Sequence record: MZ443771.1
Reading direction: 5' to 3' (one strand)
Length of the DNA: 64,000 bases
A program made the translations under genes and the position numbers. The notes under the pieces are model-generated. The model was given only the letters and a program-made list of their open reading frames with translations, was not told the DNA's origin and did no database searches. Below are positions 1,711-35,104 of the stretch, piece after piece; the stretch's first letter is position 1, and each line of letters starts with the position of its first letter.

Positions 1711-2500
1711 CTACGAAGGCCCGTACGGACTTGTTGAGTCTGACGACATGGTTCCACGTTGGTCGTACCCTGTTAAGCATGGACAGATACGAGCAGTAGA
1801 AGCGTGGGAACTTAATAAGATGGACAACATCACTGCGCCTGTGCGCATGGTGCGGGACATTCATGCGATTCATAGTATACCTGTAGAGGAACCCGATGAC
1901 TTACTCGACCTCGACGAAGAAGCCGAAAAGATCTCAAAAACTGAATCCCGACTTCTTATCAAGCCTCGACTCAATGAAGTCCGTTCCCGTAAGTACAAAG
2001 ACCACATTGGTCCAGAGAACGTCTTCACAGTCGAAGGTGACGTAATCGACGGTGCGCTCGATAGCATAGACGAGTTTTCTTCAACGTTCCGCGAGCACCT
2101 GCTGCGTAATGTATTCAGTGCCGTACTCGGCTTTGACATTGCTGCTGGTGAAGTGGAAGCAATCTCGAAAGACTGCCTCAAAACAGATTTGGAGATTGAC
2201 AGCGAACTCGTCCCATACATTGAGCGCGTGGGTATTGCTAACATCATAGGTGTAATGCTCTCTAAGTCCGAATCAGTACCCGAAGCAGTGCGTAGTGACG
2301 TGCTGAAAGACTGGCTTATCAAATCGTTCGATGATGTGCGTAACGAGTATAGGACGAAGACAGGCGATAACAAATTGCGTGATCGCATTCGTCGTCTAAT
2401 GCACGGTAACGATGAGCTTGTCGCAAAAGGTACGGGCATAGGAACAGCCCGCGGATTTACTGAGTACAGGAAGAAACAGACCGAGAATGGCCAAGCCTAA
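1703..2500 (+). CDS. hypothetical protein upstream of the terminase
   Basis: 265-aa ORF overlapping the terL start; no recognisable motif. Confidence 0.75.
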   Translation: MANYEGPYGLVESDDMVPRWSYPVKHGQIRAVEAWELNKMDNITAPVRMVRDIHAIHSIPVEEPDDLLDLDEEAEKISKTESRLLIKPRLNEVRSRKYKDHIGPENVFTVEGDVIDGALDSIDEFSSTFREHLLRNVFSAVLGFDIAAGEVEAISKDCLKTDLEIDSELVPYIERVGIANIIGVMLSKSESVPEAVRSDVLKDWLIKSFDDVRNEYRTKTGDNKLRDRIRRLMHGNDELVAKGTGIGTARGFTEYRKKQTENGQA

Positions 2501-5321
2501 AAAGGGCCCAGCATTCACTCTGCGTCCGAAACGAATAGCTGCGTTTGATGCGCTGCTTGGTGACGACGTTCGAGTGGAAGCCGCATCCGATGAGGAAGAC
2601 TTCTTATCGGATAATAGTTCGAGTGCGATTAACTTTCTCGAAAAGGGTGAGGTCAACATTGTTGATCTCGTCGAGGGTGCGTTAGAGCAACGTACAATCG
2701 TACCACGCGACTTGAAGTTTGATGACAGTTCAATGCCCAAGGCGAAACACTTCCTTGAGTGGTGTACGAGTCCAGACTTCTTAAAGTCTGACCCCTATCT
2801 CGAACAGGCCCTTATCGGCCTTCGCTTATTCGGCGAAATTTGTGTACGCTGTAGTCCTAACTTGCAGTGGATGTACACAGAAAACCATGAGCCACAAGAA
2901 ACGACAGCCGCGATAGAGACACACTTACACCTACTTCACAACGGTGTGTGCCCTCATTGCGGCGCTCGTCGTTCTGAGATGATCAAAAACGGGGAAATGA
3001 ACTTCTACAACGAACTGGCAGTGAACGCCGGACAGCGTTGTGTGATAGCGTCAACACCTGTTCTTACATCTCGTGGTATCATGCCTATCGGTCACATGAT
3101 GATTGGTCATGACACGCCTGGGTTCCACAAGCCTCGTCGCCACTATAACGCGCACAATGGCCGTGAGATCAAGAACGTCAGTCAAGTCTATGTGTCCGAT
3201 GTTGCGCCTACGAAAGTCGTAATGCTCGCAAACGGTATGTGGATTGAAGCAACCCATGAGCATCCGCTGCGAACCGAACACGGATTCAAGAAAGCCGCCA
3301 AGCTCGTTCCCGGTGACCGTATTGAAGTACGTTTAGGTACGAACTCGTGGGGCAAGATTCAACGCCCTGTCAGTATCTACGATGCTGGTATGTCTACGCG
3401 TGAAGATGCGCTGCGCTATATCTCTGATCGTTCGTTGCCATTCGGCTCGACGATGCAGCAATATGTGTCTAACGATGACGATGCTCTGCAAATGGTTGCG
3501 TCTATCCTGCTTAACGCTGGTTATATGCCAAGCATTCTGCATGGGCCCGGCGATAAGAGCATTCTGTTTGACCTGACTCAGCCGCCTCAGTGTCGTGCTG
3601 CACACATCGAAGTTATCACTGTCAATGATGGTGAAGCTCAGGTGACGTATGACCTACAGATGGAAGGCTTGCCGCAGTTTATTGCTGGTGGTATGCTGCA
3701 CCACAACAGCGGTAAGTCAGTCGTAGTAGCAATGATCTCGACCTACCTGACGCACAGGCTGCTTATGTCTCAGTCGCCTACAGGCATCTTGAGTATCGAC
3801 AGCACAACCGTATTGCACGGTACGTTCGTCGCGCTGACTCAGAAGCAAGCGTCAGATACACTCTGGACTCCGTACTTCAACTACATCATGGGCAGTCCGT
3901 GGTTCCAAGCCTATCACAATTTGATTCGCAAGCACGAACGCAAGTTCGGCATAGAGGTGATGAAGATTCGTGATACGTTCGTACTGTACGGACACAGGAA
4001 CTTCGTTATCTACCCCGCCGGTCCAGATGGTCGTATTCTTCGTGGTCGAACCCGTGTACTAGCGGTAATAGATGAAGTGGCGTACTTCGACAACGACGCC
4101 GCATCGAAGAAGATCAAAGTGAGTGCTGGTGCAGTATACGGTGCACTTGACCGTAGCCTCGCAACTGTACGAGCGAAAGAAAAGCGCCAGGTCGAAGCTG
4201 GCTATGATGAAGCGTTTACAGGTTACTTCTGCAACATTAGTAGCCCTGTACATGCGCGTGACAAGATCAACGAACTGCTTCGTATGTCTGTAGGCTCGAA
4301 GACGCTGCTTGGGATTCATGCTCCTACATGGAAGATGAACCCAGACATGCCGCGTAACTCTGAGTTCCTGCTTGAAGCGTTTCGTCGTGACCCTGTTGGT
4401 GCAGCCCGTGACTACGGAGCCGAAGCACCGTTGTCTGCTAACCCATTCATCACGCAGCCTACGTTTATCGCAGATGCTATTCGTGAGAAGGGTCGTTCGA
4501 TGTGTACCTACACGCATCACATCATTCGACACAAAGACGGGGAACGCCAGCGTTATGGCAGTCTCGTTAAAGCGGCAACGACAACCAAAGCGTCGATACT
4601 CGCAATTGATGCAGGCTTCTCGAACAACAGCTTTGCACTCGTAACAGGCTCACGCGGTGATGACGGCATTATCAGTGTCGATTGTCTCGTTGAGATCGTA
4701 CCGAAGCCGGGTATCCCTTTGAACTATACCCTCATCTTTGATGAACTGCTTATCCCGCTGTGTAAGGCACGTAACGTTCGCGTGATGCTTGCCGACCAGT
4801 GGCAGTCGCTCAAGCTGCTGCAAGATGCGAAACTGAAAGTGGATTCAATTGAGGAGTCTGACCAGTACAGCCTGAAATATCAGGACATGTGGACTGTTAA
4901 GACAATGTTCGAATCTACCCCTTCGAAGATCAGCTTGCCCCGCATGACCCACGCAGCGACAATTGCTGACACGTTGAAGTATGACGGTGATGAATATCCT
5001 CAGTGCTTTGAGAACAAACCAACAGAGCACTTGATAATGCAGCTCCAGACAGTGCAGGACACTGGGCGAAGCGTTATCAAGAACACAGGGGCAACCGATG
5101 ACCTGTGGCGAGCAATGGCACTCATGGTCTATGGCTTCGAGTGTGGTGAGTACGATGAGTATCTGACTAAAGCGGCAGAAGTAACGATGAATCGTGACCC
5201 GAATCGTCTTGGCCGTGTAGCGCATCGTCTGAACAAAGGCGTGGCGGGTTCTCTCAGCACATCGCTTACTGGTGGTCGCGTTCTTGGTAGTGCGCGTACT
5301 CGAATGATTGGCCGTAAATAA
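2487..5321 (+). CDS. terL: terminase large subunit, intein-containing
   Basis: After intein removal Walker A reads NAGQRSGKS. Walker B VIDEVAYF, coupling motif NISSP, RNase H nuclease ILAIDAG and TDDLWRA. N-terminal CxxC pairs (CVRC, CPHC). Confidence 0.9.
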   Translation: MAKPKKGPAFTLRPKRIAAFDALLGDDVRVEAASDEEDFLSDNSSSAINFLEKGEVNIVDLVEGALEQRTIVPRDLKFDDSSMPKAKHFLEWCTSPDFLKSDPYLEQALIGLRLFGEICVRCSPNLQWMYTENHEPQETTAAIETHLHLLHNGVCPHCGARRSEMIKNGEMNFYNELAVNAGQRCVIASTPVLTSRGIMPIGHMMIGHDTPGFHKPRRHYNAHNGREIKNVSQVYVSDVAPTKVVMLANGMWIEATHEHPLRTEHGFKKAAKLVPGDRIEVRLGTNSWGKIQRPVSIYDAGMSTREDALRYISDRSLPFGSTMQQYVSNDDDALQMVASILLNAGYMPSILHGPGDKSILFDLTQPPQCRAAHIEVITVNDGEAQVTYDLQMEGLPQFIAGGMLHHNSGKSVVVAMISTYLTHRLLMSQSPTGILSIDSTTVLHGTFVALTQKQASDTLWTPYFNYIMGSPWFQAYHNLIRKHERKFGIEVMKIRDTFVLYGHRNFVIYPAGPDGRILRGRTRVLAVIDEVAYFDNDAASKKIKVSAGAVYGALDRSLATVRAKEKRQVEAGYDEAFTGYFCNISSPVHARDKINELLRMSVGSKTLLGIHAPTWKMNPDMPRNSEFLLEAFRRDPVGAARDYGAEAPLSANPFITQPTFIADAIREKGRSMCTYTHHIIRHKDGERQRYGSLVKAATTTKASILAIDAGFSNNSFALVTGSRGDDGIISVDCLVEIVPKPGIPLNYTLIFDELLIPLCKARNVRVMLADQWQSLKLLQDAKLKVDSIEESDQYSLKYQDMWTVKTMFESTPSKISLPRMTHAATIADTLKYDGDEYPQCFENKPTEHLIMQLQTVQDTGRSVIKNTGATDDLWRAMALMVYGFECGEYDEYLTKAAEVTMNRDPNRLGRVAHRLNKGVAGSLSTSLTGGRVLGSARTRMIGRK
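3039..3707 (+). mobile_element. intein (223 aa, mini/degenerate) in the TerL Walker A motif
   Basis: Starts CVIASTPVLTSRG (block A), has block B EATHEHPL, block F VTYDLQM and ends HHN followed by Ser+1. Only a remnant of the endonuclease is visible (MVASILLNAGY). Confidence 0.9.
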
Positions 5322-5326
5322 AAAGC

Positions 5327-5340
5327 TAATTTAGACGAGT
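5327..5340 (+). promoter_or_regulatory. motif B (TAATTTAGACGAGT), candidate late promoter
   Basis: Intergenic between terL and the Zn-ribbon/portal genes. The identical 14-mer occurs on the - strand at 48580-48593. Confidence 0.55.
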
Positions 5341-5363
5341 CAGTTAATACAAGGAACTAGATC

Positions 5364-5579
5364 ATGAGCAAGCATTATAACCCGCTTCTGACTTCAAACA
5401 CTGTAAAGTCAGAGTCGAAGGACTCACAGGTGGAAAGCACAAGCGGCGCGTTCGTTGTTGATAGCGCCAATGTCTGTCCTAAGTGCAGTTCTGCAACCGT
5501 GCCTACGCAATTGCTTTCTGGTGAAGGCGTAATGTTCTGCACCAGTTGCCGCGTGAGTCTCGCAATCCCTTTGAAGTGA
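5364..5579 (+). CDS. small zinc-ribbon protein
   Basis: CPKC...CTSC motif; RBS aagga. Confidence 0.75.
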   Translation: MSKHYNPLLTSNTVKSESKDSQVESTSGAFVVDSANVCPKCSSATVPTQLLSGEGVMFCTSCRVSLAIPLK

Positions 5580-5586
5580 GGTAACT

Positions 5587-7521
5587 ATGGGCGTTCAGGT
5601 AGGTCGTCGTCATCTTGGCGGCGCACAGCCAGAGCCTGCGAAAAAGAAAGAGAAATCTATCGGCGCAGCCTCTTTACCGCGCGAGATAGGCAAAGCAATC
5701 CGCAGTGAGAGTTCGAGGCGCAATCTTGACTTCGTATCTCAATCTGCGGGCGGCGCAGGAATGGCTGCCGGTAATATGCAAATTGGTACTGTCCCTCTTG
5801 ATATCGACTTAGAGCCGATGATGGAAGGTATGGACTATGATGCTGACGACCGACAGCTATTCAATGTCTACCGCGATATGTATCACTTCGACCCAATCTG
5901 CGGTTCTTACGTGGACTTGTTCTCAACGCTGCCATTCTCCGATGTGAGTTTCAGTGGCGCGAAAGACAGTGTGCTCGAACCGTATTACGAAGTGAATGAG
6001 CGTCTGTCACTGACGACCAGTATGCCGAACATCACTACCGATATTCAGGTTACTGGTGCGTTCGTCGGCAGTATGATCTACAACAAAGACCGCAAAAAGT
6101 TCATCGACTTGATGACGCACCGTTACGACAACATCGACGTAACGCCACTGCCGTTTATCAGTCAGGACCCTATGTTCGAGCTGCGCATTCCACAGTACGT
6201 TAAAACTGCCTTCGCAAAAGAAGGTAAGCGTATTGACGCGCTGAAAAAAGAGCTGGGCCCTGGGTTTGTCGATAAGCTAATGAACGACACGACGATGGAG
6301 CTTGACCCCATCGGCACGATCTACATTCCGCGTAAGACGTTCAGCTTTGGTGAAGGTATCTCGGTGTTACGCCGTGTGCTGCCAATCTGGTTGATCGAAA
6401 AGAACCTGTATCGAGGAACGTTGATTGAATCGGGTCGTCGTCAACGCGGTATCTTACACGCCCAGTTGGGTGATGGTGATCAGTGGGAACCGTCGCAAGA
6501 AGAAATGGACTTTATGACCGACCTTCTTCTGTCTGCGGATAGTGACCCGATTGGATCTATCATTACCACGCGCTTAGGCGTGAACATCAGTGAGTTCCGC
6601 CAAGGCGGTGACTTCTGGAAGATTACGGACATCTGGGACCAGACTGCTCAATTCAAAATGCGAGCTATGGGCATCAGTGAAGCGTTCCTCAGCGGTGAAG
6701 CGAACTATGACTCGGGTGCTGCTGGCCTGACGATTTTCGTTGAAGCGATGCGAGCGTTCCGTGATCATCTGACGCGTAAAGTCTACTATGAGAAGGTCTT
6801 CCCTCTTATCAGTATGATGAATGGTCTGGCTGTTCAGCGTAACGGCAAGATCATTAAGAAGAACAACATGATGGAAGGTGGCTTGACCGAAATCATGTAC
6901 AAACTGAATGACGGTAGCAAACTGTTTATTCCGAATGTGCATTGGTCTAAGCAACTGCGACCTGATGTTGACCAAGCGATGATGGAAAACTTACGTGCGA
7001 TGACTGAGCTGGGTGTTCCGGTTCCATTACGTGCAATCGCTGCGGCTGGCGGGTACAACTTCGACCAGATTCTTATGGATCAGGATGAAGACCTCGCAAT
7101 GCGCCGTAAGCTGATGGCGTATCGCAAACGTATGGCAGAGATCGACGCTGAGTTCGCTCCTCCTGAACCTGGTGGTGGAGGCGGTGAAGACAGCTTTAGT
7201 TCTGTCAGTTCTATGTCTGCTGACCTCAAACGTCGCCGCAGACACATCGCTGGTATCGGCCTGTCTTCTGCTGTACTCGGTGGCGAACAACGCAAGCTGC
7301 TCAATCGTGACTTCGGTGAACGTTCCGAAATCTACGAAATCGGTAAGACTGGTAAGAAGAAACACGTCTTCCGTCAGTCTGTCGCAAACAGTCGTGCGAA
7401 TGACGCTATCTGGAAAGCGGCGAAGAACTATGAAGCAAACAAAACGATGCCTCTTGATGACGGCAAGGTTTCCTTCAAGCCTACCGCGCAGGAGCTTCGT
7501 GCAATGTCGAGACTCCGTTAA
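5587..7521 (+). CDS. probable portal protein
   Basis: 644 aa, located just after terL. Has a portal-like N-terminal stretch (YRDMYHFDPICGSYVDLFSTLPFSD) and a helical, disordered C-terminus. The call rests mostly on size and synteny. Confidence 0.6.
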   Translation: MGVQVGRRHLGGAQPEPAKKKEKSIGAASLPREIGKAIRSESSRRNLDFVSQSAGGAGMAAGNMQIGTVPLDIDLEPMMEGMDYDADDRQLFNVYRDMYHFDPICGSYVDLFSTLPFSDVSFSGAKDSVLEPYYEVNERLSLTTSMPNITTDIQVTGAFVGSMIYNKDRKKFIDLMTHRYDNIDVTPLPFISQDPMFELRIPQYVKTAFAKEGKRIDALKKELGPGFVDKLMNDTTMELDPIGTIYIPRKTFSFGEGISVLRRVLPIWLIEKNLYRGTLIESGRRQRGILHAQLGDGDQWEPSQEEMDFMTDLLLSADSDPIGSIITTRLGVNISEFRQGGDFWKITDIWDQTAQFKMRAMGISEAFLSGEANYDSGAAGLTIFVEAMRAFRDHLTRKVYYEKVFPLISMMNGLAVQRNGKIIKKNNMMEGGLTEIMYKLNDGSKLFIPNVHWSKQLRPDVDQAMMENLRAMTELGVPVPLRAIAAAGGYNFDQILMDQDEDLAMRRKLMAYRKRMAEIDAEFAPPEPGGGGGEDSFSSVSSMSADLKRRRRHIAGIGLSSAVLGGEQRKLLNRDFGERSEIYEIGKTGKKKHVFRQSVANSRANDAIWKAAKNYEANKTMPLDDGKVSFKPTAQELRAMSRLR

Positions 7522-12251: not shown

Positions 12252-13022
12252 ATGAGCAACATTGATAATACAATGCCTGAGGGCAAGTGGGAGTTCAACG
12301 AGCCTGTTGCTGCTGTGTTCGATAACATGCTGCAAAACTCAATCCCGTCGTATGGCCGTATGCGCGACTTGACCTATCGTCTGGGTCGTCAGTTCGTCAC
12401 GCCCGGTACTGCTATCGTTGACCTCGGAGCTTCTCTGGGTCGTGCTGTTGAGCCGTTCTGCAAAGAGTTCGGCGAGTACATCTACGTTCACGCTGCTGAC
12501 CGTCCTGAGCCAGATCGTGAAATCGGTAACATGTACTGCTGCTACGAAGTCGCTCCTGCGATGCTTGAACGCCTGCGTGAAAACGAAGTGCTGAAAGCGG
12601 CCAAAGCGAAAATCAGTAGCGAATCGCTGGTGGACGTTGACACGTTCCGCTTCGACGAACAGGTTGAGTGCTCGCTCATTCTGTCTGTACTCACTCTCCA
12701 GTTCACGCCGATTGAACATCGTCAACACGTCCTTGAGAAAGTCTATGACTCTCTTGCAAAAGGCGGTGCGTTCATTCTCGTTGAGAAGGTTCTCGGTGAC
12801 GACAACTTCCTCGACCGTCTGCTGGTGGACACGTACTATCACATGAAAGGCGACAACGGCTACACGCAAGAATCTATTGCATGTAAGCGTAAGTCACTCG
12901 AAGGTATTCTGGTGCCTGTCAAAGCTGCATGGAACGAAGAACTGCTGCGCAAAGCGGGCTTCAACCGTGTAGAATGTTTCTACCGCGATCTCAACTTCGC
13001 CGGATGGATCGCAATTAAGTAA
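12252..13022 (+). CDS. cmoA: carboxy-S-adenosyl-L-methionine synthase (CmoA homolog)
   Basis: Collinear with E. coli CmoA: WEFNEPVAAVFDNM..SIPSY, DLGASLG, TLQF, GGAFILVEK, NGYT..I..KRKSLE (the conserved carboxylate-binding Arg), AGF and NF. Confidence 0.9.
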   Translation: MSNIDNTMPEGKWEFNEPVAAVFDNMLQNSIPSYGRMRDLTYRLGRQFVTPGTAIVDLGASLGRAVEPFCKEFGEYIYVHAADRPEPDREIGNMYCCYEVAPAMLERLRENEVLKAAKAKISSESLVDVDTFRFDEQVECSLILSVLTLQFTPIEHRQHVLEKVYDSLAKGGAFILVEKVLGDDNFLDRLLVDTYYHMKGDNGYTQESIACKRKSLEGILVPVKAAWNEELLRKAGFNRVECFYRDLNFAGWIAIK

Positions 13023-13032
13023 GGGAAGTAGC

Positions 13033-14295
13033 ATGAAAGTAAACGGGCGTATCTTAGCAATCGTACCGCACAAGACTCTGGCTGATCGCACGAAGTCTGG
13101 TGTTGGTGCTTACATCGACGGACTCGAAGCGTATGGCTTCTGCGACTTCACCACTGACGGTGAGAACAGTTCCGTAACCAAGAGCTTGTGGTTTAACTAC
13201 GGTGACACCACGCTGAGTGATGGTTACAAAGTAGGGCACATTCAAAGTGAACTGCTTGCTGCTCTTGAGCGTCATCCGTATCGTGCAATCATTTGCAGCA
13301 CATACGAAGCGATTGAAGCTGCTGTCGGTCTGGGCTTGCCAAAGATTATGCCCGTTTACTATCGTTCGCATAACAGCTTCCTGTTGACGCAAGATCTCAA
13401 TGGTCTCGGTGCTGAGAAGATTCACCGTGCTCTACTGCAAGCTGGCGTAACTGGTCTGCGTGTGTTAGCGAACTGTGATTCAACTGCAAACAATCTGGCA
13501 TCACGTTATCCTGTTGCTGCGTCTGTCGCGTACAACTCGTTCAACGTGCCTGACTACAATCCACCAGCAAAGCGCAAGCCGACGCTGTTGATTATCTGTC
13601 GCTACGAAAAGGTTAAGCGCCCTGCGTTTGCTGCTCGTATCGCTGCTGCATCTGGTCTGCCTGTTCGTGTGATGACGGGCAGTGATCGCCAAGTTAAAAG
13701 CTGGCAGAAAGAATTGACCGATGCTGGTGTCAAAGACCATACAGTCGTTAGCGGTATCAGCGGCAAAGAGAAACTTGAGTTCATCGGTGCTTGTACCGTG
13801 GCTCTCTCCTGCGCTGAAATCGAATCGTTCGCTAACGGTGTGCGTGAGTCTATCCCGTACTGCCCAACGTTCATCGTGCAAACATCGAAGTTCGACTGGG
13901 CGAAAGATTACACACGCTTCTGCTCTCTGGACAAACACATCCACGTTCGCACCGTCGACCGTGTGACAGAGCAGGAAGTCACTGAGCTGGGTAATGAGAT
14001 TGCTTACTGGGCTACTACTCGCTACCTGAACAATGCTCAACGTAAAGACTTGATGACCAAGTGGGTTGCTCAAGTCGATAAAGGCTGGGCTGACTTTATG
14101 AAGAATGCCGTTGTTGCTGATGACGGTAAGCCTATGAAAACTGACCTGTCGAAAGAACTCGAACAAAAAGGCGTAGTAGACTGGTCAGAAGTACCTGCGC
14201 TTATGCGTACTGTAAAAGCATTACACAAATGCCATGCTCGTATGGGCCTGACATTCGATGGCACCAAAATCAAAACTAAAGGAAGAAAGAAATGA
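13033..14295 (+). CDS. GT-B fold glycosyltransferase (GT4-like)
   Basis: N-terminal SGVGAYI, C-domain LIICRYEKVKRP (GR...K) and ESFANGVRES (E.FG...EA). Confidence 0.75.
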   Translation: MKVNGRILAIVPHKTLADRTKSGVGAYIDGLEAYGFCDFTTDGENSSVTKSLWFNYGDTTLSDGYKVGHIQSELLAALERHPYRAIICSTYEAIEAAVGLGLPKIMPVYYRSHNSFLLTQDLNGLGAEKIHRALLQAGVTGLRVLANCDSTANNLASRYPVAASVAYNSFNVPDYNPPAKRKPTLLIICRYEKVKRPAFAARIAAASGLPVRVMTGSDRQVKSWQKELTDAGVKDHTVVSGISGKEKLEFIGACTVALSCAEIESFANGVRESIPYCPTFIVQTSKFDWAKDYTRFCSLDKHIHVRTVDRVTEQEVTELGNEIAYWATTRYLNNAQRKDLMTKWVAQVDKGWADFMKNAVVADDGKPMKTDLSKELEQKGVVDWSEVPALMRTVKALHKCHARMGLTFDGTKIKTKGRKK

Positions 14296-15326
14296 GCGTG
14301 ATTGGTGATATCTATAACATTCCTCAACCGTATGCGATGTACTGCGGCAATGCCAAAACCAAAGCAATGGCAAAGATTACTGCCGGTATGGTTGAGTGGG
14401 CTCCTGAGAAGGTATGTTGTGTAGTCGAAGACGCTGAACGTTTGTTCGCTGACGTACCGTGTGTTGAAGTGCGCGATCTCGATAAGACCGACGCTGAAAC
14501 TCTGGTTATCGGCTTTGCGCCATTTGGCGGTCAGATTAACGATGACATTGATCGCGTTGTCTGCGAAGCATTAAAGCGCGGTCTGAACGTTGCTGCTGCT
14601 CTGCACGTCAAACTGGCAGACAATCCTAAATACTTCGCGCTCGCTCGTGAGCACGGTGTATCACTGTATGACTTCCGCCATCACCCTGAGCAATATCCTC
14701 TGGGCACCGGTATTCGTCGTGACGGTATTCGCGTTCTGACTGTTGGCACCGACTGCTCCTGCGGTAAGAAATTCACTGCGCTCGCTCTGACCAAGAAGCT
14801 GACCGAGATGAGTCAGAAAGCTGTGTTCTGTGCTACAGGCCAGACAGGCTTCTTGATTAGCGGTCGTGGCATCAACAACGACACTGTGGTTGCTGACTTC
14901 CTTGCTGGTGCTGCTGAGTGGCTTTCACCTGATGACAAAGACGCAATCTATTTGATTGAAGGTCAAGGCGCTATTCGTCACCCTGCGTATACTGGTGGCA
15001 GCATGAGTCTGATTGCTGGCTCGCAACCTGATGCGCTCGTTATGTGTCACACTGTTGGCCGTAACGTCATGATGGGCACTGAGCGCGAGATCAGTATCAC
15101 GGACGAAATCTCTGCTAACCTTGCAGCGGCTGCGATGCACGACTGGTACCCTCGCGTTGTTGGTATCAGTATCAACTTCTGCGAGTCTGGTATGAGCAAA
15201 GAACAGCGCAAGAAGTATCTGGCGACTATTGAACGTAACATCGGCTACGTAGCGTTCGACCCGCAAGAAGGTGGCGAAGCGTTTGACCGTGTTGCTACTA
15301 CCATAGCGTTGCTGTCGCGCCCATGA
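14292..15326 (+). CDS. DUF1611 / DgcN-family P-loop protein
   Basis: VIGFAPFGG, VGTDCSCGKKFT, ATGQTG, DFLAGAAE, IEGQGAIRHPAY, GSQPDALVMCH. Confidence 0.88.
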   Translation: MSVIGDIYNIPQPYAMYCGNAKTKAMAKITAGMVEWAPEKVCCVVEDAERLFADVPCVEVRDLDKTDAETLVIGFAPFGGQINDDIDRVVCEALKRGLNVAAALHVKLADNPKYFALAREHGVSLYDFRHHPEQYPLGTGIRRDGIRVLTVGTDCSCGKKFTALALTKKLTEMSQKAVFCATGQTGFLISGRGINNDTVVADFLAGAAEWLSPDDKDAIYLIEGQGAIRHPAYTGGSMSLIAGSQPDALVMCHTVGRNVMMGTEREISITDEISANLAAAAMHDWYPRVVGISINFCESGMSKEQRKKYLATIERNIGYVAFDPQEGGEAFDRVATTIALLSRP

Positions 15327-16260: not shown

Positions 16261-17130
16261 ATGGCTAAACACGTTTTGCGTAAGCTGTTTGAACAGCACG
16301 TTAAGCAAGAGGTTAAAGCTGACAAAGTTGCGGTGCTGCTGTCAAGCGGCCTTGATGGACTTGTCAGTGCTCTTGCTGCCCACGACTTAGGAAAGAAGGT
16401 ACATGCCTTTACTTTCCAGATGGGTGACAACGAAAGTTTTGACAGCAAACACGCACGTAAAGTAGCAGAGAAGATGGGCTGGGAGTTCACGCTTGTGAAA
16501 GTTCCTACGTCCGACACTGCTATCGCTCAGGGCTGGCGCACACTTCACGCCAAGTATCGCTGTATCAAAAAGCGTGACTACGAGTGTGCTTACCCTATGG
16601 TGTATTGCTACAAGGCAATCAAAGAAGCAGGTTACAAGTACGTTCTCAGCGGCCTTGTTGCTGACGCTTACTTCTGCTTTGCGCGTAATACCCACATCGC
16701 AAAAATCAGCGGCCCGCATAGCGTACTCGAAAAGTTCGACGAGTATCGCAAAGAGTATTGGGCGCCGTGGTTCAAGAACGGTAAGAAGTCTCTCGGCGTT
16801 GACGGCTATAATCCAAGTGGTATGCTGCAACACGAAATGCTGTGCGACACTTTCGGCCTGACTCACGTTAACCCGTGGCTGTTGAAAAAAGTCCATGACT
16901 ACTTCATCGGTCGTTCGTGGCAAGAACTAAATCAACCCAAGCAGAAAATGCCAATAACAGAAGCCTGGGCTGATCACATCGCTGTGGTAGGGCATCGTCC
17001 TCACCGTGGCTATCAAACAGAAGCTGGAGTACCTGCGTACTTCGAACGCTTACTGGATAATCCTGAGATCAACTTCAACGGTCGCAAGCGTGTTATGGAC
17101 CTTGCGCGTGATTGGTCAACGAGGACTTAA
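16261..17130 (+). CDS. asparagine-synthetase-like ATP-dependent amide ligase (synthetase domain only)
   Basis: PP-loop VLLSSGLDG and VLSGLVADAYF (AsnB SGEGADE.F). No N-terminal Cys glutaminase domain. Confidence 0.75.
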   Translation: MAKHVLRKLFEQHVKQEVKADKVAVLLSSGLDGLVSALAAHDLGKKVHAFTFQMGDNESFDSKHARKVAEKMGWEFTLVKVPTSDTAIAQGWRTLHAKYRCIKKRDYECAYPMVYCYKAIKEAGYKYVLSGLVADAYFCFARNTHIAKISGPHSVLEKFDEYRKEYWAPWFKNGKKSLGVDGYNPSGMLQHEMLCDTFGLTHVNPWLLKKVHDYFIGRSWQELNQPKQKMPITEAWADHIAVVGHRPHRGYQTEAGVPAYFERLLDNPEINFNGRKRVMDLARDWSTRT

Positions 17131-20755: not shown

Positions 20756-21598
20756 ATGACAGTAATCAGCCCCATTCGTTATCAGGGCAATAAGCGTAGC
20801 CTTATCCCTCTTATTCTTGAAAACACACCTGATGTGAAAGACTGCCCGCGTATGGTCGATGTGTTTGGCGGTAGTGCCACCGTGTGCGCGAACATGCCTC
20901 AGAAGTTTCGCGTCTACAACGAGCTTAGTCCTCAGGTGTATGAGATCGTTAAGATGCTTGTCGAGCAAGACCCGAAGAAAACATTGGGTCAAGTCAAGCG
21001 TCTGGTAAAGCACTGGTGCCTGACAAACAGCAACGAAGCGAACTATGACGCGTTTCGAACTGTCGTCCAGAAGAAGCGTACTCCCATACTTCACTACGTT
21101 GCGCACAGACACGCACACTCGAACATGCTGCGCTTTAACCAGCAGGGTGTGTACAACGTAGGCTTCGGCGATCGTGGTCTGATTGGAAAGTTCGAGGAGC
21201 TTGAGCATGAGCTTACGACATTCCACCAGCACATGCAGGGTGTTCACCTGACGAACATGAAGTACGGTAAGTTGTTGGGTAGATTAGGCAATCAACTGGA
21301 TTGCAATACGTTCTGCTACTTCGACCCACCGTATCTGGCAAGTGGCGCGATGCAGTACGGCAAGTGGACTGAATCAAACGAACGTAACCTGCTTGCTACG
21401 CTTGAACAACTCAATCGCTTAGGCGTACCGTGGATGTTGAGCAACGTTACAGAGCACAGGCATTTCTCGAACGACCTGTTAAAGCGTTGGCTAAAGAAAC
21501 ACGCGACGACCGTGCTCTACCCGAACAAAAGCTATGCGATGAACAACGGCCAGAGTGGCTCGCATGGTACTGTTGAAATTCTGGCAATGAACTACTGA
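20756..21598 (+). CDS. dam: Dam-like (D12 class) N6-adenine DNA methyltransferase
   Basis: SPIRYQGNK, DVFGGSATV and DPPY. Start reassigned to ATG 20756. Confidence 0.88.
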   Translation: MTVISPIRYQGNKRSLIPLILENTPDVKDCPRMVDVFGGSATVCANMPQKFRVYNELSPQVYEIVKMLVEQDPKKTLGQVKRLVKHWCLTNSNEANYDAFRTVVQKKRTPILHYVAHRHAHSNMLRFNQQGVYNVGFGDRGLIGKFEELEHELTTFHQHMQGVHLTNMKYGKLLGRLGNQLDCNTFCYFDPPYLASGAMQYGKWTESNERNLLATLEQLNRLGVPWMLSNVTEHRHFSNDLLKRWLKKHATTVLYPNKSYAMNNGQSGSHGTVEILAMNY

Positions 21599-28849: not shown

Positions 28850-29187
28850 CTACACCAGTAATTCGCTTTGACGAACAGACACGTCAACTGCTGGCAAAGA
28901 TCTTCGGCATACATAAGCCGTTCTTTGTTGTGCGTCGTGATACGATCATCTCAGGTGGTGACTTGGGCTTTCGTGTGTATCTGTCGAATGGCACCAACAC
29001 TGTTACCGTTCCTCGCGTTAAAGGCCTTGACTTGGGCGACAAGCTCTATCTTGGTGATGACGAGGAAGTTTATGAGTGGCATCCTCATATAGGCTGCACG
29101 TATATGGCCATTGGCGATAATCAGCCAGAAGCACTCGCATTTGGTCTTCATCCAATCGTTTTTCACAAAGACAGTCGGAACTCTTAA
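28846..29187 (+). CDS. hypothetical protein
   Basis: ATGA overlap with the previous gene. Confidence 0.65.
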   Translation: MTTPVIRFDEQTRQLLAKIFGIHKPFFVVRRDTIISGGDLGFRVYLSNGTNTVTVPRVKGLDLGDKLYLGDDEEVYEWHPHIGCTYMAIGDNQPEALAFGLHPIVFHKDSRNS

Positions 29188-30290
29188 TGGCAAAGCAAAC
29201 TCTTGATCTACGCGATCCTAATCAGTACGAACTCTATTCCCTGCATTGTGTTGACGAGCAATACATCAATCTGGGCAACGCTATCATCTCTCAGGGTACT
29301 GATGAGTCAGACCCAGGCCGTACAGAAGATACGTGGCGCACCATTATCGGCTGTGGCTTCCAGTTGTCAAACACGCTGATCGCTTTCCCTGCGTTAGTCA
29401 GTGCTCGTAAGAACTGGCTGGCAGCAGTCGATGAGATGTGCTGGATGTCTCGCGGCGAAACGAATATCAGCTCGCTCAATTCCAAAATCTGGAATGAGTG
29501 GGCAGATGAAGACGGCGAGTGCGGCCCTATCTACGGTCTGATGTGGCGCATGTGGCCTGATATCAAAACGTTCCCGACTATTGAGTCGATGAAAGAGCGT
29601 CAGATCAGCGATGCAGAAATCGAGCGCATCTCGAAAGAGATCAATCGCATGAAAGCTGCCGGGTACACTGAAACGCAAATGGCTGACGGTCGTGTGTGCT
29701 ACGAAGGTACAGTTGACCAGTTCGCTGATGCGCTGCGTCAGGTAATGGCCCGCAGTCGTTCTCGTCGTATTCGCGTTCAGGCGTACAACCCGTCCTATCT
29801 GCACATGCAGGGTCTGCCTCCGTGCCACACCGAGTTCGAGTTCAACGTAACCAAGCCGACGCTGTATGAAATCGCTCAGATGGAAGCGCGTCAAATGGCA
29901 CCGGCCGAAGATTCGTTGCACATCGTTGTGACCATGAGATCGAACGATGTGCTCTTGGGCAGGCCATTTAACATCATCGGCTACAGCGCCATGCACCAGA
30001 TGATTGCCAAGTGGGCTGGCTTGAACGTCGGTAGCTTTACGCTCAACACTACCAACACGCACCTGTACACGCATCACTTTGAAGCGTTTGAAAAGCAGCG
30101 TGAGCAGTGGGCAGTTCTCGCAGACAACATGAAGCGCACTGGCGAACCTGTTGTCTATCCTATGCTGGAAATCAGCGACGACATTCTCGGTCTGACGCCG
30201 GAAGAGTTGCTGGACAACGCGAACGCAGAGTGGTTCCAGCTTCTCGATTACGCACCATCACCAGCGGTCAAAGGACGTGTGACGAAATGA
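29187..30290 (+). CDS. thyA: thymidylate synthase (ThyA type)
   Basis: EMCWMSRG, IWNEWA, GPIYG..WR, SRRI, LPPCH, RSND..LGRPFN (Asn, dUMP-specific) and HLY. Confidence 0.93.
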   Translation: MAKQTLDLRDPNQYELYSLHCVDEQYINLGNAIISQGTDESDPGRTEDTWRTIIGCGFQLSNTLIAFPALVSARKNWLAAVDEMCWMSRGETNISSLNSKIWNEWADEDGECGPIYGLMWRMWPDIKTFPTIESMKERQISDAEIERISKEINRMKAAGYTETQMADGRVCYEGTVDQFADALRQVMARSRSRRIRVQAYNPSYLHMQGLPPCHTEFEFNVTKPTLYEIAQMEARQMAPAEDSLHIVVTMRSNDVLLGRPFNIIGYSAMHQMIAKWAGLNVGSFTLNTTNTHLYTHHFEAFEKQREQWAVLADNMKRTGEPVVYPMLEISDDILGLTPEELLDNANAEWFQLLDYAPSPAVKGRVTK

Positions 30291-32268: not shown

Positions 32269-32973
32269 ATGGCAAAAACTGCTACCAAAACAAAGGACGG
32301 AAAAAAGAAAGGCGAGTTGAAGTTTGATCTGAAAAAACTCAATTCAGTCTCTCAGCTCAAGGGCGCAGAGTACAACCCGCGCTTCATTACTGACAGTCGC
32401 TTGAAAGCTCTCGAAGGTTCTCTCGGGAGTTTCGGTGATCTGTCTGGTATCGTGTTCAACAACAACATCAAGTCTGGTGTGTTGATCTCAGGCCACCAGC
32501 GTCTGAAATCAATCGACGGTTGGAAAACTCGCATCGAGATTCAGCCGACGACTGACAAGCACGGTACTATCGGTCTGGGCTACATTCATGCAACGCATCC
32601 GAAGAAAGCTGATCGTGTTATCAGCATTCCTCTGCGTGTCGTGAACTGGACTGATAAGAAAGCTGAGTACGCAGCGAACATCGCAGCGAACGCCCACGGC
32701 GGTGAGTTCGATAACAAGAAGCTCGCCAAGCTGGTTGAGAAACTCGATCTGAATACGATCAAGCCTCAGCTGCTGGGTCTCGACCCGCTTGAGATTCGTG
32801 GTCTGCAAGCCAAGATCAAGATTCAGGCGAACGTCGAAGATACGAAACGTGCTGGCAAGACTACTGGCCAGATGAACGGCAGCACCGGTAAGTTTAATGA
32901 GTACAACCCTGATGATGTGGGTGACACTCTGAACTGCACCTGCCCGCGTTGTGGATTTAAGTTCGAGGGATAA
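32269..32973 (+). CDS. ParB/Srx-like N-terminal domain protein with a C-terminal Zn ribbon
   Basis: YNPRFI...LEGSL..FG.L..IV, LISGHQRL, and C-terminal CTCPRCGFKF. Confidence 0.75.
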   Translation: MAKTATKTKDGKKKGELKFDLKKLNSVSQLKGAEYNPRFITDSRLKALEGSLGSFGDLSGIVFNNNIKSGVLISGHQRLKSIDGWKTRIEIQPTTDKHGTIGLGYIHATHPKKADRVISIPLRVVNWTDKKAEYAANIAANAHGGEFDNKKLAKLVEKLDLNTIKPQLLGLDPLEIRGLQAKIKIQANVEDTKRAGKTTGQMNGSTGKFNEYNPDDVGDTLNCTCPRCGFKFEG

Positions 32974-32974
32974 T

Positions 32975-35104
32975 ATGATCATCAAGCCGCCAACCATGAA
33001 GGAAATCAACAAGCTGGCTAAACCCTGGCGTGGTATGAGTTTCTTCGCAGGTTGCGGTGGGTCTTCGACCGGTCACAAGATGGCCGGTATCGACATTCTG
33101 TTGAGCAACGAGTTTATTGACTCTGCGCGTGAGTCGTATGAAGCAAACCACCCGACAACCAAAGTGCTGCCTCATGATATCCGTCGCTTAGACCCAAGCA
33201 AGCTGTTGCGCTACTGCGGTCTTGCTAAGGGTGAGCTGGATTTGCTTGATGGTAGTCCTCCGTGCTTTACCGAAGACACAATCATCCACACTGCTGACGG
33301 CATGAAGTTCATTTCTGATATGCACGTCAACGATCTGGCAATGACGAGCGTTGGTGAATACTTTCCTGTGTACGACACTATGGTTCGTCCGTATGTCGGT
33401 ACGATGCACAAGATTGAAACGATGCTCGGTAGCAACAAAGCAACGCCAGAGCACCCGTTCTTTGTTCGTCGCTCTCAGGCAGACGGTAGCTACTCTGAGC
33501 CGTTCTGGTGTGATGCGAAAGACGTGCAAGAAGGTGACTTGCTCGGTACGCCGCGCACTACCCCTGACATGGGGATTGACGTGTATCAGGCTCAGATTGA
33601 TCAGTTGCCTAAGTTAGTAGCGGACTGGGTGACTTACCCTGAGTTCTGGTGGATGATTGGTCACTGGTGTGATCGTGGCACAATCGAAACAGTTAACGGT
33701 GTTGACGTCATCTGCTTCGAGTCGCACTCAAGCCTTGAGAACGCGATGATCGAGCAGGCGTTTGATGCGCTTAAAATCAGTAGCCTGAATCGTATCGACA
33801 CGACAACGGCGCAGCGCAAAACATTCCGCACTGTTATCGAAGCAGAGCTGGTGCAGTTCCTGCGTCGATTCGTCAGTCAGGAGCAGAACAAGTTTTCTCG
33901 TCGTCTGCCTGCAATCGTGTTCCATTTGTCAAACGAGTTGAAGCAACAATTCATTCTCGGTTGTGCGGGGCATGACTACGTGACTGCTATGGGCACAAGC
34001 CTTGCTATCACATCTGATAGTCGCCGCTTCCTGATTGAGCTGAACTACCTGTGTGCGTCTGCTTTCAATCGTCCGCTGTTTGACGGTCTTATCTGGGCAG
34101 ACGTTAACTTCGGTAGTGCGTTAACGCCGCGTGAGCGTAACAGTTCACGAGCGCATATCGGCTTCCTGTTCCTGCAGGATGAAGCGCTGTTCATGCACGA
34201 GTTCTCCGATGAAGACCCGCATCTCTGGGTTGAAGTGATTGAGAACCTCGCGTATCAGGCGACCTGTGACGTGTATAACTTCTCTGTGCAGACAGACGAG
34301 ACATACGTTGCAAATAGCATGGTCGTTCACAACTGCAAAGGCTTCTCTACTGCTGGTGTGAAAGAAGAAGGCTGGGGCAAAGAAGTTAAATACAGCGACA
34401 ACAAGTATCAGCAGGTTGATGACCTGTTCGATCAGTATTGCCGTATGCTTCAAGGCATGGAGCCAAAAGTGTTCACTGCGGAAAACGTCAGCGGCCTAAT
34501 CAAGGGTACCTCTAAAGGGTACTTTGTCGAAATCATGAAGCACTTCGACAGATTAGGTTATTATGTTCGTGCTCCGATGCTGAATGCTTGCTGGCTTGGC
34601 GTACCGCAGTCGCGTGAACGTATCATCTTCATGGGTGTGCGCAAAGACGTTGCCCATGCTCTCGGCTATAAGTCTGCTCAGACCGCTGTGCCTGATGTTA
34701 TCCCGTGCGAGACGCAAGCGTTTCTCGGTGATGCGTTGCCGCACATCATGCGATACAAAACAACGCAGCGTGACCTGATCAAATATCTGCCTGCCGTTAA
34801 CGGTCCGATGCCTACGATTACTGCTGCTGATGCGATTGCGTATGAGACTGCGCGATTCTCGTCTGCTGGCTTTATCGAAGACAACAAAGGTCATCGGCGT
34901 AAGCTGACCATCGACGAACTCAAAGTTATCTCTGGACTGCCGTCTGACTATAAGCTGATGGGTGAGTTTGAAGAACAATGGGAACGTCTTGGTCGTATCT
35001 GTGTGCCAGCAATGACACACGCTGCATCTAAGGCTTTCATCGAGCACATTCTTCTGCCGTATGCGAAGAAGCGTAAGAAGAAGCCCGGCGATATCTTTAA
35101 GTAA
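32975..35104 (+). CDS. DNA cytosine-C5 methyltransferase-fold enzyme, predicted carboxymethyltransferase; intein-containing
   Basis: Motif I FFAGCGG, IV GSPP|C-KGFS, VI ENV, VIII PQSRER, IX RKLTIDE. Motif X reads LGRICVP (Arg at 34994-34996 in place of Asn). Start ATG 32975; 352 aa after splicing. Confidence 0.85.
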   Translation: MIIKPPTMKEINKLAKPWRGMSFFAGCGGSSTGHKMAGIDILLSNEFIDSARESYEANHPTTKVLPHDIRRLDPSKLLRYCGLAKGELDLLDGSPPCFTEDTIIHTADGMKFISDMHVNDLAMTSVGEYFPVYDTMVRPYVGTMHKIETMLGSNKATPEHPFFVRRSQADGSYSEPFWCDAKDVQEGDLLGTPRTTPDMGIDVYQAQIDQLPKLVADWVTYPEFWWMIGHWCDRGTIETVNGVDVICFESHSSLENAMIEQAFDALKISSLNRIDTTTAQRKTFRTVIEAELVQFLRRFVSQEQNKFSRRLPAIVFHLSNELKQQFILGCAGHDYVTAMGTSLAITSDSRRFLIELNYLCASAFNRPLFDGLIWADVNFGSALTPRERNSSRAHIGFLFLQDEALFMHEFSDEDPHLWVEVIENLAYQATCDVYNFSVQTDETYVANSMVVHNCKGFSTAGVKEEGWGKEVKYSDNKYQQVDDLFDQYCRMLQGMEPKVFTAENVSGLIKGTSKGYFVEIMKHFDRLGYYVRAPMLNACWLGVPQSRERIIFMGVRKDVAHALGYKSAQTAVPDVIPCETQAFLGDALPHIMRYKTTQRDLIKYLPAVNGPMPTITAADAIAYETARFSSAGFIEDNKGHRRKLTIDELKVISGLPSDYKLMGEFEEQWERLGRICVPAMTHAASKAFIEHILLPYAKKRKKKPGDIFK
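33263..34333 (+). mobile_element. intein (357 aa) with a degenerate LAGLIDADG-type domain, inserted just before the catalytic Cys
   Basis: Starts CFTEDTIIHTADG, has block B ATPEHPF, block F DVYNFSVQTDETY and ends VHN followed by Cys+1. Endonuclease-like blocks WWMIGHWCDRG and QFILGCAGHD are degraded. Confidence 0.92.

Follow-up and report, generated by a model that had tools for sequence, protein, structure and literature searches.

The cmoX locus of phage pEa_SNUABM_20

The DNA studied here, called the window throughout, is the 64,000-nucleotide stretch that corresponds to nt 1-64000 of MZ443771.1 (100% identity, same coordinates), the record of Erwinia phage pEa_SNUABM_20, a 265.9-kb Alexandravirus jumbo phage whose host is Erwinia amylovora. 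Our subject is one gene of this window, a putative cmoX, named after the SpCmoX enzyme of Synechococcus phage S-B43 (Yang et al., Nat Commun, December 2025; PMC12783734), together with a cmoA homologue, a CmoY-like ligase gene, the three genes lying between these two, and a ParB-like gene just upstream of cmoX (Table 1). All genes around cmoX, cmoX included, are annotated as 'hypothetical protein' in the record.

The cmoX reading frame comprises 709 codons with no internal stop. A 717-residue form starting at the GTG codon at 32951 was ruled out, since the orthologues begin with MII or MLI and the ParB-like gene would be overlapped. The PF00145 model (C-5 cytosine DNA methylase) matched the product with an E-value of 5.8e-38, in two stretches that flank an intein. 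When the intein was removed in silico, a protein of 352 residues was obtained in which motif IV is restored as GSPPCKGFS. The computed masses are 80.2 kDa for the precursor, 39.5 kDa for the spliced enzyme and 40.8 kDa for the free intein.

Table 1. Coordinates of the genes and features of the window discussed in the text
Feature	Position	Strand	Basis
cmoA homologue (carboxy-S-adenosylmethionine synthase), 256 aa	12252..13022	+	TIGR00740 2.8e-41; 4GEK 1.3e-29; identities to SpCmoA and PaBG
GT-B (GT4-like) glycosyltransferase-fold protein, 420 aa	13033..14295	+	AlphaFold2 pLDDT 79.5; Foldseek
DUF1611 / DgcN-like P-loop protein, 344 aa	14292..15326	+	PF07755 2.5e-51; PF17396 2.1e-17
Short pyridoxal phosphate-dependent alanine/serine-racemase-like protein, 311 aa	15323..16258	+	PF01168 1.8e-14; TIGR00492 and VanT matches
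CmoY-like ATP-dependent amide ligase, 289 aa, asparagine-synthase C-terminal/PP-loop domain, no glutaminase	16261..17130	+	PF00733; SpCmoY homology
ParB-like protein gene	32269..32973	+	phrog_620 'ParB-like partition protein' 4.5e-32; PaBG synteny
cmoX precursor gene, 709-aa cytosine-C5 methyltransferase-fold homologue split by intein	32975..35104	+	open reading frame; PF00145; 8YF3 best PDB match; Foldseek
N-extein, aa 1-96: motif I FAGCGG; F24, E46, F47, D68; GSPP of motif IV	32975..33262	+	alignment to SpCmoX F25, E47, F48, D69; invariant columns
Intein, 357 aa, 40.8 kDa, all splicing residues, degenerate-looking central LAGLIDADG-like domain	33263..34333	+	PF14890; TIGR01443; shared insertion site; L010/L012
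C-extein, 256 aa: CKGFS, GWGKEVKYSD loop, ENV, QSRER, target-recognition region, RRKLTIDE (IX), GRICVP (X)	34334..35104	+	motif alignment
+1 Cys codon TGC, C-extein splice nucleophile and predicted catalytic Cys of motif IV	34334..34336	+	aligns with SpCmoX Cys-98 and HhaI Cys-81
Arg-674 codon CGT (Arg-317 after splicing), position of SpCmoX Arg-350 / HhaI Asn-304 / M.MpeI Asn-374	34994..34996	+	alignment; published overlay (PMC12783734)

The motif X arginine and the relationship with SpCmoX

In a sequence search of the PDB, the best match of CmoX was 8YF3, the structure of SpCmoX (1e-58), followed by the far weaker M.HaeIII (9e-19), DNMT1, M.HhaI (2e-10) and M.MpeI (4DKJ, 2e-6), and the spliced protein is 35% identical to SpCmoX over the full length (E-value 4e-68). 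The whole 709-residue precursor was modelled with AlphaFold2, and the exteins reached predicted local distance difference test (pLDDT) values above 90. When this model was compared with the PDB by Foldseek, the top match was again 8YF3 (E-value 2e-17, template modelling score 0.77 normalised to 8YF3), and HhaI, HaeIII and MpeI came next. SpCmoX makes 5-carboxymethylcytosine (5cxmC) from carboxy-S-adenosylmethionine (carboxy-SAM) in vitro and accepts this cofactor only, not S-adenosylmethionine (SAM); in Escherichia coli it yields 5cxmC only when cmoA is present, and its target is GC (PMC12783734).

In the 8YF3 crystal, Arg-350 stands in place of HhaI Asn-304 and touches the carboxymethyl group of carboxy-SAM, the equivalence of the two residues being based on an overlay; the authors describe it as mirroring the engineered N374K change of M.MpeI, and their R350N mutant accepted neither SAM nor carboxy-SAM (PMC12783734). 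In our phmmer alignment, which places EQWERLGRICVP over the 8YF3 segment QQTERVGRMVPP, the arginine of motif X (R317 in spliced numbering) pairs with R350. Moreover, the residues that contact the cofactor in SpCmoX (Phe-25, Glu-47, Phe-48, Asp-69) and its nucleophile (Cys-98) are each matched by the same amino acid here (F24, E46, F47, D68 and Cys).

A preliminary description of this DNA, made from its letters alone, had predicted a natural DNA cytosine carboxymethyltransferase with all catalytic motifs of the cytosine-C5 methyltransferases (C5-MTases) intact, a spliced form of 352 residues, and a motif X reading EQWERLG-R-ICVP in which an arginine takes the canonical Asn position. These claims stood up well. 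FAGCGG, ENV, QSRER and RRKLTIDE are present and motif IV is complete after splicing; intein removal yields exactly 352 residues; motif X was found exactly as described, with CGT at 34994-34996 encoding residue 674 of the precursor; and the arginine pairs with SpCmoX R350, which overlays HhaI N304 (PMC12783734). The prediction itself is supported by 8YF3 being the best match by sequence and by fold, and by the alignment of the arginine with Arg-350.

Conservation within the family points the same way. In an alignment of 107 sequences, F24, G26, G28, G29, E46, D68, S94, P95, P96 and C454 are invariant, as are E503, N504, V505, Q545, R547, R549, R642, E648 and R674, and F47 is kept in at least 90% of the family alignment. 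A census was also made of the best 120 homologues out of a 5.8-billion-protein search, with 121 sequences aligned: the S, P, P and C of SPPC are invariant in all 121, and the ENV motif and the RxR arginines are invariant among the 120. The GWGKEVKYSD loop of the C-extein is specific to the family. At the motif X position, 115 of the 121 sequences have Arg, five the canonical Asn (GN[AS]VPP) and one Met. According to this alignment, the column is the canonical Asn site and the arginine is the signature of the CmoX family. Three further residues are kept in 100% of the 115 Arg-type homologues: Y116 and S117 (spliced numbering), which belong to the YSD loop, and E313, a Glu that precedes the Arg by four residues. 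At least one of the three is lost in five of the six non-Arg variants, a small sample. Tyr116, Ser117 and Glu313 may thus be further determinants of carboxy-SAM use.

The full set of C5-MTase motifs and the PF00145 membership would also suit an ordinary SAM-dependent enzyme making 5-methylcytosine (5mC), in which the arginine is neutral or structural, and the canonical Asn in 5 of 121 close relatives indicates that the scaffold supports both states. We nevertheless regard this explanation as extremely unlikely, because wild-type SpCmoX, which carries the same arginine, took only carboxy-SAM (PMC12783734), because Arg so strongly predominates and the variants without it have mostly lost Tyr116, Ser117 or Glu313, and because cmoA accompanies cmoX in 50 of 50 Erwinia and Dickeya phage records. 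The Asn-type close relatives are P0060, P0067, P0074, P0091 and P0110 and the Met-type is P0023 (loci L017-L019). The Asn-type proteins may be reversions to SAM-dependent methylation; no cmoA-like gene was found near these variants in their contigs of about 6 kb, which are too short for linkage to be judged.

A carboxymethyltransferase of the CmoX type, by contrast, agrees with what is known of the nearest characterized enzymes. Like SpCmoX, the pEa_SNUABM_20 protein has the C5-MTase fold, the SPPC motif and a GWGK..YSD loop after motif IV, and is co-encoded with CmoA and CmoY homologues; unlike the intein-free SpCmoX, it is split by a 357-residue intein at the catalytic cysteine. With M.MpeI N374K, which uses carboxy-SAM and forms 5cxmC according to the account given in PMC12783734 of Wang and Kohli 2021, it shares a basic residue in place of the motif X Asn. 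However, that residue is a natural Arg here and an engineered Lys there, M.MpeI is distant and CpG-specific, and natural CmoX, as shown for SpCmoX, is exclusive for carboxy-SAM. M.HhaI and M.HaeIII share the fold, motifs I, IV, VI, VIII, IX and X and, as predicted here, the covalent Cys-C6 mechanism, whereas they have Asn (GN[AS]V), use SAM, make 5mC and are without the GWGK..YSD insertion.

The SPPC motif and an Arg at the SpCmoX R350 position are the two criteria by which 5,615 CmoX candidates were gathered (PMC12783734). The pEa_SNUABM_20 protein has both and, as judged from its sequence, every other mark of the family at this level, so that cmoX here would be a further instance of an enzyme class already published. 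A text search of the supplementary files of PMC12783734 found no occurrence of Erwinia, Dickeya, PaBG, intein or racemase. The idea of a natural carboxymethyltransferase is thus no longer new: the discovery of CmoX in 2025 independently bore out the same chemical logic.

An intein at the catalytic cysteine

The intein spans residues 97-453 of the precursor. Its first residue is Cys (CFTEDT...), block B reads TPEHPF, and VVHN at its end precedes the +1 Cys, so that all the splicing blocks of a class 1 intein are present (Cys1, TxxH, HN and the +1 Cys). It was recognized by PF14890 (3e-09, 37.3 bits against a cut-off of 35.8) and by TIGR01443 (18.9 against 15.6). The insertion, 1071 nt and in frame, splits motif IV as GSPP|C...HN|CKGFS. 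Further CmoX homologues are interrupted exactly at this SPP|C site by inteins that differ in size (171 residues in P0038, 259 in P0006 and about 380 in L010), and intein-less relatives reach 70% identity (P0001). In particular, a filled and an empty allele were found in two contigs of one sample series: L010 encodes a 743-residue protein with the intein and L012 a 341-residue protein with none; identity between their exteins amounts to 97-99%, and the junction lies at GSPP|C. This pair fixes the intein boundaries.

Alexandravirus (AD1), Sasquatchvirus (Y3) and Yoloswagvirus share homologous inteins, with splicing residues conserved throughout and also in L010. Over AD1, Y3 and Yoloswagvirus, the identity of the intein is 80, 70 and 40%, respectively, and that of the exteins about 90, 78 and 75%; the intein evolves faster than the exteins. 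The L010 intein (L010 7783-10014) has canonical LAGLIDADG motifs, FLGDGW and SADG. In the Erwinia phage inteins, DRG, AHG or SNG replaces the GDG of the first motif, and the second motif has lost 3 residues, which suggests that the homing endonuclease has decayed and that the intein is fixed and vertically inherited in these phages. The central domain had no Pfam or PDB match, and a PDB sequence search with the intein gave only the marginal 2LWY (E-value 0.79).

With SPP and the catalytic Cys 357 residues apart, the insertion could simply have wrecked the motif IV active site and left a dead methyltransferase with no functional enzyme, and the degenerate homing-endonuclease motifs and the poorly modelled intein region would fit such decay. 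This is very unlikely, however: the insertion is in frame with Cys1, TxxH, HN and the +1 Cys in place, the better conservation of the exteins is the pattern that selection for a spliced product would leave, and further members of the family carry inteins of different sizes at this very site.

An active enzyme released by splicing is therefore retained as our interpretation, and the position of the intein deserves attention in itself. An HMMER scan of 1.84 billion cluster representatives gave 923 relatives of the intein. About 21 of the best 150 come immediately behind the 'PP' in motif IV of a C5-MTase, and their hosts include enzymes of the Arg type as well as of the Asn type. These insertions show the motif IV Cys to be a recurrent intein site in the C5-MTase superfamily. 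The literature yielded no mention of an intein at this cysteine of the C5-MTases, and an intein at the catalytic Cys, kept across three phage genera, appears to be an undescribed feature. Class 1 inteins with LAGLIDADG domains in phage replication and nucleotide-metabolism proteins have the same Cys1, TxxH, HN and +1 Cys; they too hit the most conserved active-site position and occur as natural filled and empty alleles. The difference here is that the host protein is a CmoX-type DNA modifier whose +1 Cys would itself be the catalytic nucleophile, and that the endonuclease motifs are seemingly decayed in the Erwinia phages and canonical in the metagenomic relative. Such an arrangement would be a natural 'caged' form of an enzyme that is of interest for epigenomic labelling.

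The CmoA homologue and the CmoY-like ligase

The preliminary description had also placed a carboxy-SAM synthase in the same window, and the CmoA homologue at 12252-13022, which matches TIGR00740 and 4GEK, agrees with this. Its E-value against 4GEK, the E. coli CmoA structure, is 1.3e-29; it is 31% identical to SpCmoA and 41% identical to the PaBG gene that adjoins cmoX, and it belongs to the phage family phrog_4752 (1.3e-79). SpCmoA was shown to make carboxy-SAM and to feed SpCmoX (PMC12783734). A cassette census was based on the 50 Erwinia and Dickeya phage records with both cmoA and an intein-containing cmoX; cmoX was always accompanied by cmoA in these phages, as given above. In PaBG, the contiguous order is a ParB-like gene, cmoX (no intein, 48% identical), cmoA, a 150-residue open reading frame and the ligase gene; in the metagenomic contigs L010 and L011, it is cmoX (with intein), the glycosyltransferase gene, DUF1611, the ligase gene and cmoA.

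CmoB is the tRNA enzyme that normally consumes carboxy-SAM, and enterobacterial hosts carry it. Since tRNA modification is the only classical role of CmoA, and since cmoA and cmoX are not adjacent here, the phage CmoA might serve the 5-carboxymethoxyuridine at tRNA position 34 (cmo5U34) via host CmoB, boosting phage translation, and have nothing to do with cmoX. We found no homologue of E. coli CmoB in any phage record save one Salmonella fragment, and none in those records that have a CmoA homologue, and therefore the phage CmoA has no phage-encoded tRNA-modifying partner. Moreover, cmoA adjoins cmoX in PaBG and S-B43 and adjoins the cmoX-linked ligase cassette in L011, and the CmoA of S-B43 supplies SpCmoX (PMC12783734). 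The tRNA explanation is consequently the least credible of those weighed in this work, and a supply of carboxy-SAM to CmoX is preferred.

The ligase shows PF00733 at residues 6-139 (6.9e-16), and its residues 14-287 (of 289) align with SpCmoY at 276 positions with 34% identity (E-value 2e-53); a PDB sequence search with it gave nothing useful. SpCmoY amidates 5cxmC with glycine, and ligase clusters with non-glycine active sites have been noted (PMC12783734). The pEa_SNUABM_20 ligase is homologous to SpCmoY over the full length; like SpCmoY, it has an adenylating domain of the asparagine-synthase type and lacks a glutaminase domain. It differs from SpCmoY in its strict linkage to a DUF1611 gene, and sibling phages swap in ligases that are only about 25% identical. 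The racemase-like and DUF1611 neighbours hint at an amine other than glycine for this ligase.

A proposed pathway for cytosine carboxymethylation

Altogether, we consider it very probable that the product of cmoX, an 80-kDa precursor split by an intein, is a DNA cytosine C5-carboxymethyltransferase of the CmoX type. Several observations weigh against this assignment. The full-length TIGR00740 match of the CmoA homologue scores 141.8 bits, below the equivalog cut-off of 193.3; cmoA and cmoX are 20 kb apart in this phage, where cmoX pairs with the ParB-like gene, whereas S-B43 has cmoA, cmoY and cmoX contiguous; the target-recognition region is dissimilar to that of SpCmoX and allowed no detailed alignment; the central intein domain has a pLDDT below 50 in the AlphaFold2 model; and no literature report of modified bases in Alexandravirus DNA was found. 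The literature on Alexandravirus, vB_DsoM_AD1 and PaBG likewise contained no mention of DNA modification, restriction resistance or a methylase intein.

The pathway that we propose would begin with CmoA, which, by homology to the S-B43 enzymes, would convert SAM and prephenate to carboxy-SAM. Meanwhile the 357-residue intein, to judge from its intact splicing residues and the conservation of the exteins, would excise itself and join GSPP to CKGFS, forming the SPPC loop. As the catalytic loop is interrupted in the precursor, we expect activity from the 39.5-kDa spliced enzyme and none from the precursor; with the +1 nucleophile of the intein serving as the catalytic Cys, CmoX would switch on only after splicing. 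By homology, CmoX would then flip a cytosine out of the phage duplex DNA after replication, and Cys-454 would attack C6. C5 would accept the carboxymethyl group of carboxy-SAM while its carboxylate is bound by Arg-674, as predicted from the crystal and assays of SpCmoX, and the product would be 5cxmC. Finally, the CmoY-like ligase would adenylate the 5cxmC carboxylate and amidate it with some amine, the reaction type again being predicted by homology. The likely benefit would be a phage DNA shielded from host nucleases.

The target motif of CmoX is probably short. The target-recognition region, put at about 85 residues in the preliminary description, measures a close 92 from QSRER to the motif IX Arg, and that of SpCmoX 115. 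It is family-specific, with LPHI, PxPTITAxD and ETAxFSSxGFIE conserved. A short or relaxed target with dense modification is plausible because SpCmoX recognizes only GC; in S-B43, modification affects about 75% of the GC sites and about 10% of C (PMC12783734). However, since the region is unlike that of SpCmoX, GC specificity cannot be assumed for the pEa_SNUABM_20 enzyme, and the attempt to derive a target from the length or similarity of a region that could not be aligned was dropped. If the target were GC, the GpC dinucleotides concerned would hold 29% of the cytosines of the window.

If the assignment is right, natural DNA carboxymethylation extends to cultivable enterobacterial jumbo phages, with 50 sequenced Erwinia and Dickeya isolates and tractable hosts; some of these isolates are used in fire-blight phage cocktails.

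A variable cassette between cmoA and the ligase gene

In pEa_SNUABM_20, cmoA and the ligase gene enclose the GT-B, DUF1611 and racemase-like genes, whose reading frames abut or overlap; in comparison with S-B43, these three genes are additions. A PDB sequence search with the 420-residue protein gave nothing useful, and the fold search then gave GT-B, with GlgM, the phage HY126 glycosyltransferase, BshA and TarM as matches (E-values from 1e-10 to 1e-8, Foldseek); one of its sequence homologues carries PF00534. The 344-residue protein matched NF041892 (DgcN) with 1.4e-91, below the equivalog cut-off. The designation DgcN-like follows the name of the NCBIfam model; a literature search for DgcN found only unrelated acronyms. 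The racemase-like protein retains the lysine motif PVVKGNFYGHG.

The content of this segment varies among the 50 records. A ligase of the pEa_SNUABM_20 type (type A) is present in 34, all of which have DUF1611 as well (34 of 34); the glycosyltransferase gene is also present in 21 of them and the racemase-like gene in only 12. The remaining 16 records have another ligase (type B or C, about 25% identical) directly after cmoA, accompanied in Y3 by a putative 'oxygenase'. Four versions can thus be told apart: GT-B, DUF1611, racemase-like and ligase A (12 records); GT-B, DUF1611 and ligase A (9); DUF1611 and ligase A (13); and another ligase (16). These variants sit in near-identical sibling phages, as seen at loci L004 (AD1), L005 (pEa_SNUABM_35) and L006 (Y3). 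AD1 has DUF1611 with ligase A, pEa_SNUABM_7 the glycosyltransferase gene in addition, pEa_SNUABM_35 ligase B, and Y3 ligase C with the 'oxygenase'. Cassettes of a hypermodification pathway seem to have been swapped in the interval that separates cmoA from the next conserved gene, and we read this variation as a modular system with a constant carboxymethyl handle and a variable appended group.

A similar set of genes was met outside this group. In L007, a metagenomic jumbo-phage contig syntenic with the window, the order is cmoA, an 84-residue open reading frame, the glycosyltransferase (36% identical), DUF1611, racemase-like and ligase genes, and a DAHP (3-deoxy-D-arabino-heptulosonate 7-phosphate) synthase gene. 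Upstream in our window lie two open reading frames (944 and 644 residues, 2487-7521, + strand) and a 5'-3' exonuclease gene (PF02739/PF01367, 8917-9945, + strand), and L007 has the same order; L007 is therefore a distant relative of the pEa_SNUABM_20 group. The L007 DAHP synthase (14162-15025), encoded directly after the CmoY-like ligase, is of the aroFGH type (TIGR00034, 180 bits against a cut-off of 173). It could raise the shikimate flux to prephenate, the co-substrate of CmoA, whose supply was left as an open question by the CmoX paper (PMC12783734). No DAHP synthase gene was found in the 64-kb window.

What the pathway makes in the end is a separate matter. CmoX could act as proposed and the pathway end at plain 5cxmC or, as in S-B43, at 5-glycyl-carboxymethylcytosine, with the proteins of the GT-B, DUF1611 and racemase-like genes unrelated to DNA: the homology of the ligase to SpCmoY, which is specific for glycine, covers the full length, jumbo phages are rich in auxiliary metabolic genes, and no chemistry ties the three extra genes to DNA. 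We find this rather unlikely, although it is the most serious of the alternatives. Indeed, the three genes are tightly packed between cmoA and the ligase gene; homologues of GT-B and DUF1611 stand beside cmoX in the unrelated contigs L010-L012, the glycosyltransferase gene directly so; the five-gene order recurs in the distant L007; DUF1611 never parts from the type A ligase in the records; and the published survey of ligases already contains clusters that do not look glycine-specific (PMC12783734).

Because the cassette differs between siblings, hypermodifications other than 5-glycyl-carboxymethylcytosine are suggested for this phage group. From their place in the gene neighbourhood, the DUF1611, GT-B and racemase-like proteins would probably supply or decorate the appendage, and we would guess that the product in pEa_SNUABM_20 is a glycosylated and/or D-amino-acid-bearing carboxamide. 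The variable cassette appears to be undescribed. The combined view that 5cxmC is only a first step, from which a swappable cassette leads to undescribed cytosine hypermodifications, and that CmoX is gated by splicing, is put forward tentatively, as having somewhat less than an even chance of being right. The phages offer a natural experiment, in which cmoA and cmoX are constant and the downstream ligase, GT, DUF1611 and racemase-like genes are exchanged among close relatives. The 'further amide modifications' that, according to the CmoX authors, are still to be found (PMC12783734) can be approached directly through this diversity, which is also relevant to the resistance of phages to restriction and CRISPR tools and to artefacts in the sequencing or cloning of these DNAs.

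The ParB-like gene upstream of cmoX

The stop codon of the ParB-like gene lies 1 nt before the cmoX ATG, and the two genes are therefore probably co-translated. A Pfam search with this reading frame gave nothing even at E = 5, and the PHROGs search provided the match given in Table 1. The protein is 44% identical to the ParB-like protein whose gene also precedes cmoX in PaBG, so that PaBG and the Erwinia phages have this conserved gene pair in common. ParBc proteins are encoded, without explanation so far, in 1,660 CmoX contigs (PMC12783734), and some phage thymine dioxygenases (5mYOX) need a cognate ParB-like activator (PNAS 2026, PMC13229309). As in the latter case, a ParB-like gene here adjoins that of a post-replicative base-modifying enzyme in a phage hypermodification locus; unlike it, the enzyme has a methyltransferase fold rather than a dioxygenase one, and the relationship is suggested by gene order. 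By this analogy, we hypothesize that CmoX may have the ParB-like protein as a partner or activator, which would load or activate it on DNA. SpCmoX, for its part, works without any ParB (PMC12783734).

The C-terminus of the ParB-like protein, CTCPRCGFKFEG, resembles half of a zinc ribbon, and the orthologues in AD1 and Y3 are annotated as 'putative transcriptional repressor'.

Other genes of the window

A D12-class (Dam-like) N6-adenine DNA methyltransferase is encoded at 20756-21598 (+ strand; PF02086, 5.1e-23), and a second, independent DNA modification is therefore probable in pEa_SNUABM_20. A thymidylate-synthase homologue of 367 residues is encoded at 29187-30290 (+ strand); PF00303 matches it across residues 24-365 (2.3e-55) and TIGR03284 scores above its cut-off, and an internal insertion makes it some 80-100 residues longer than usual.

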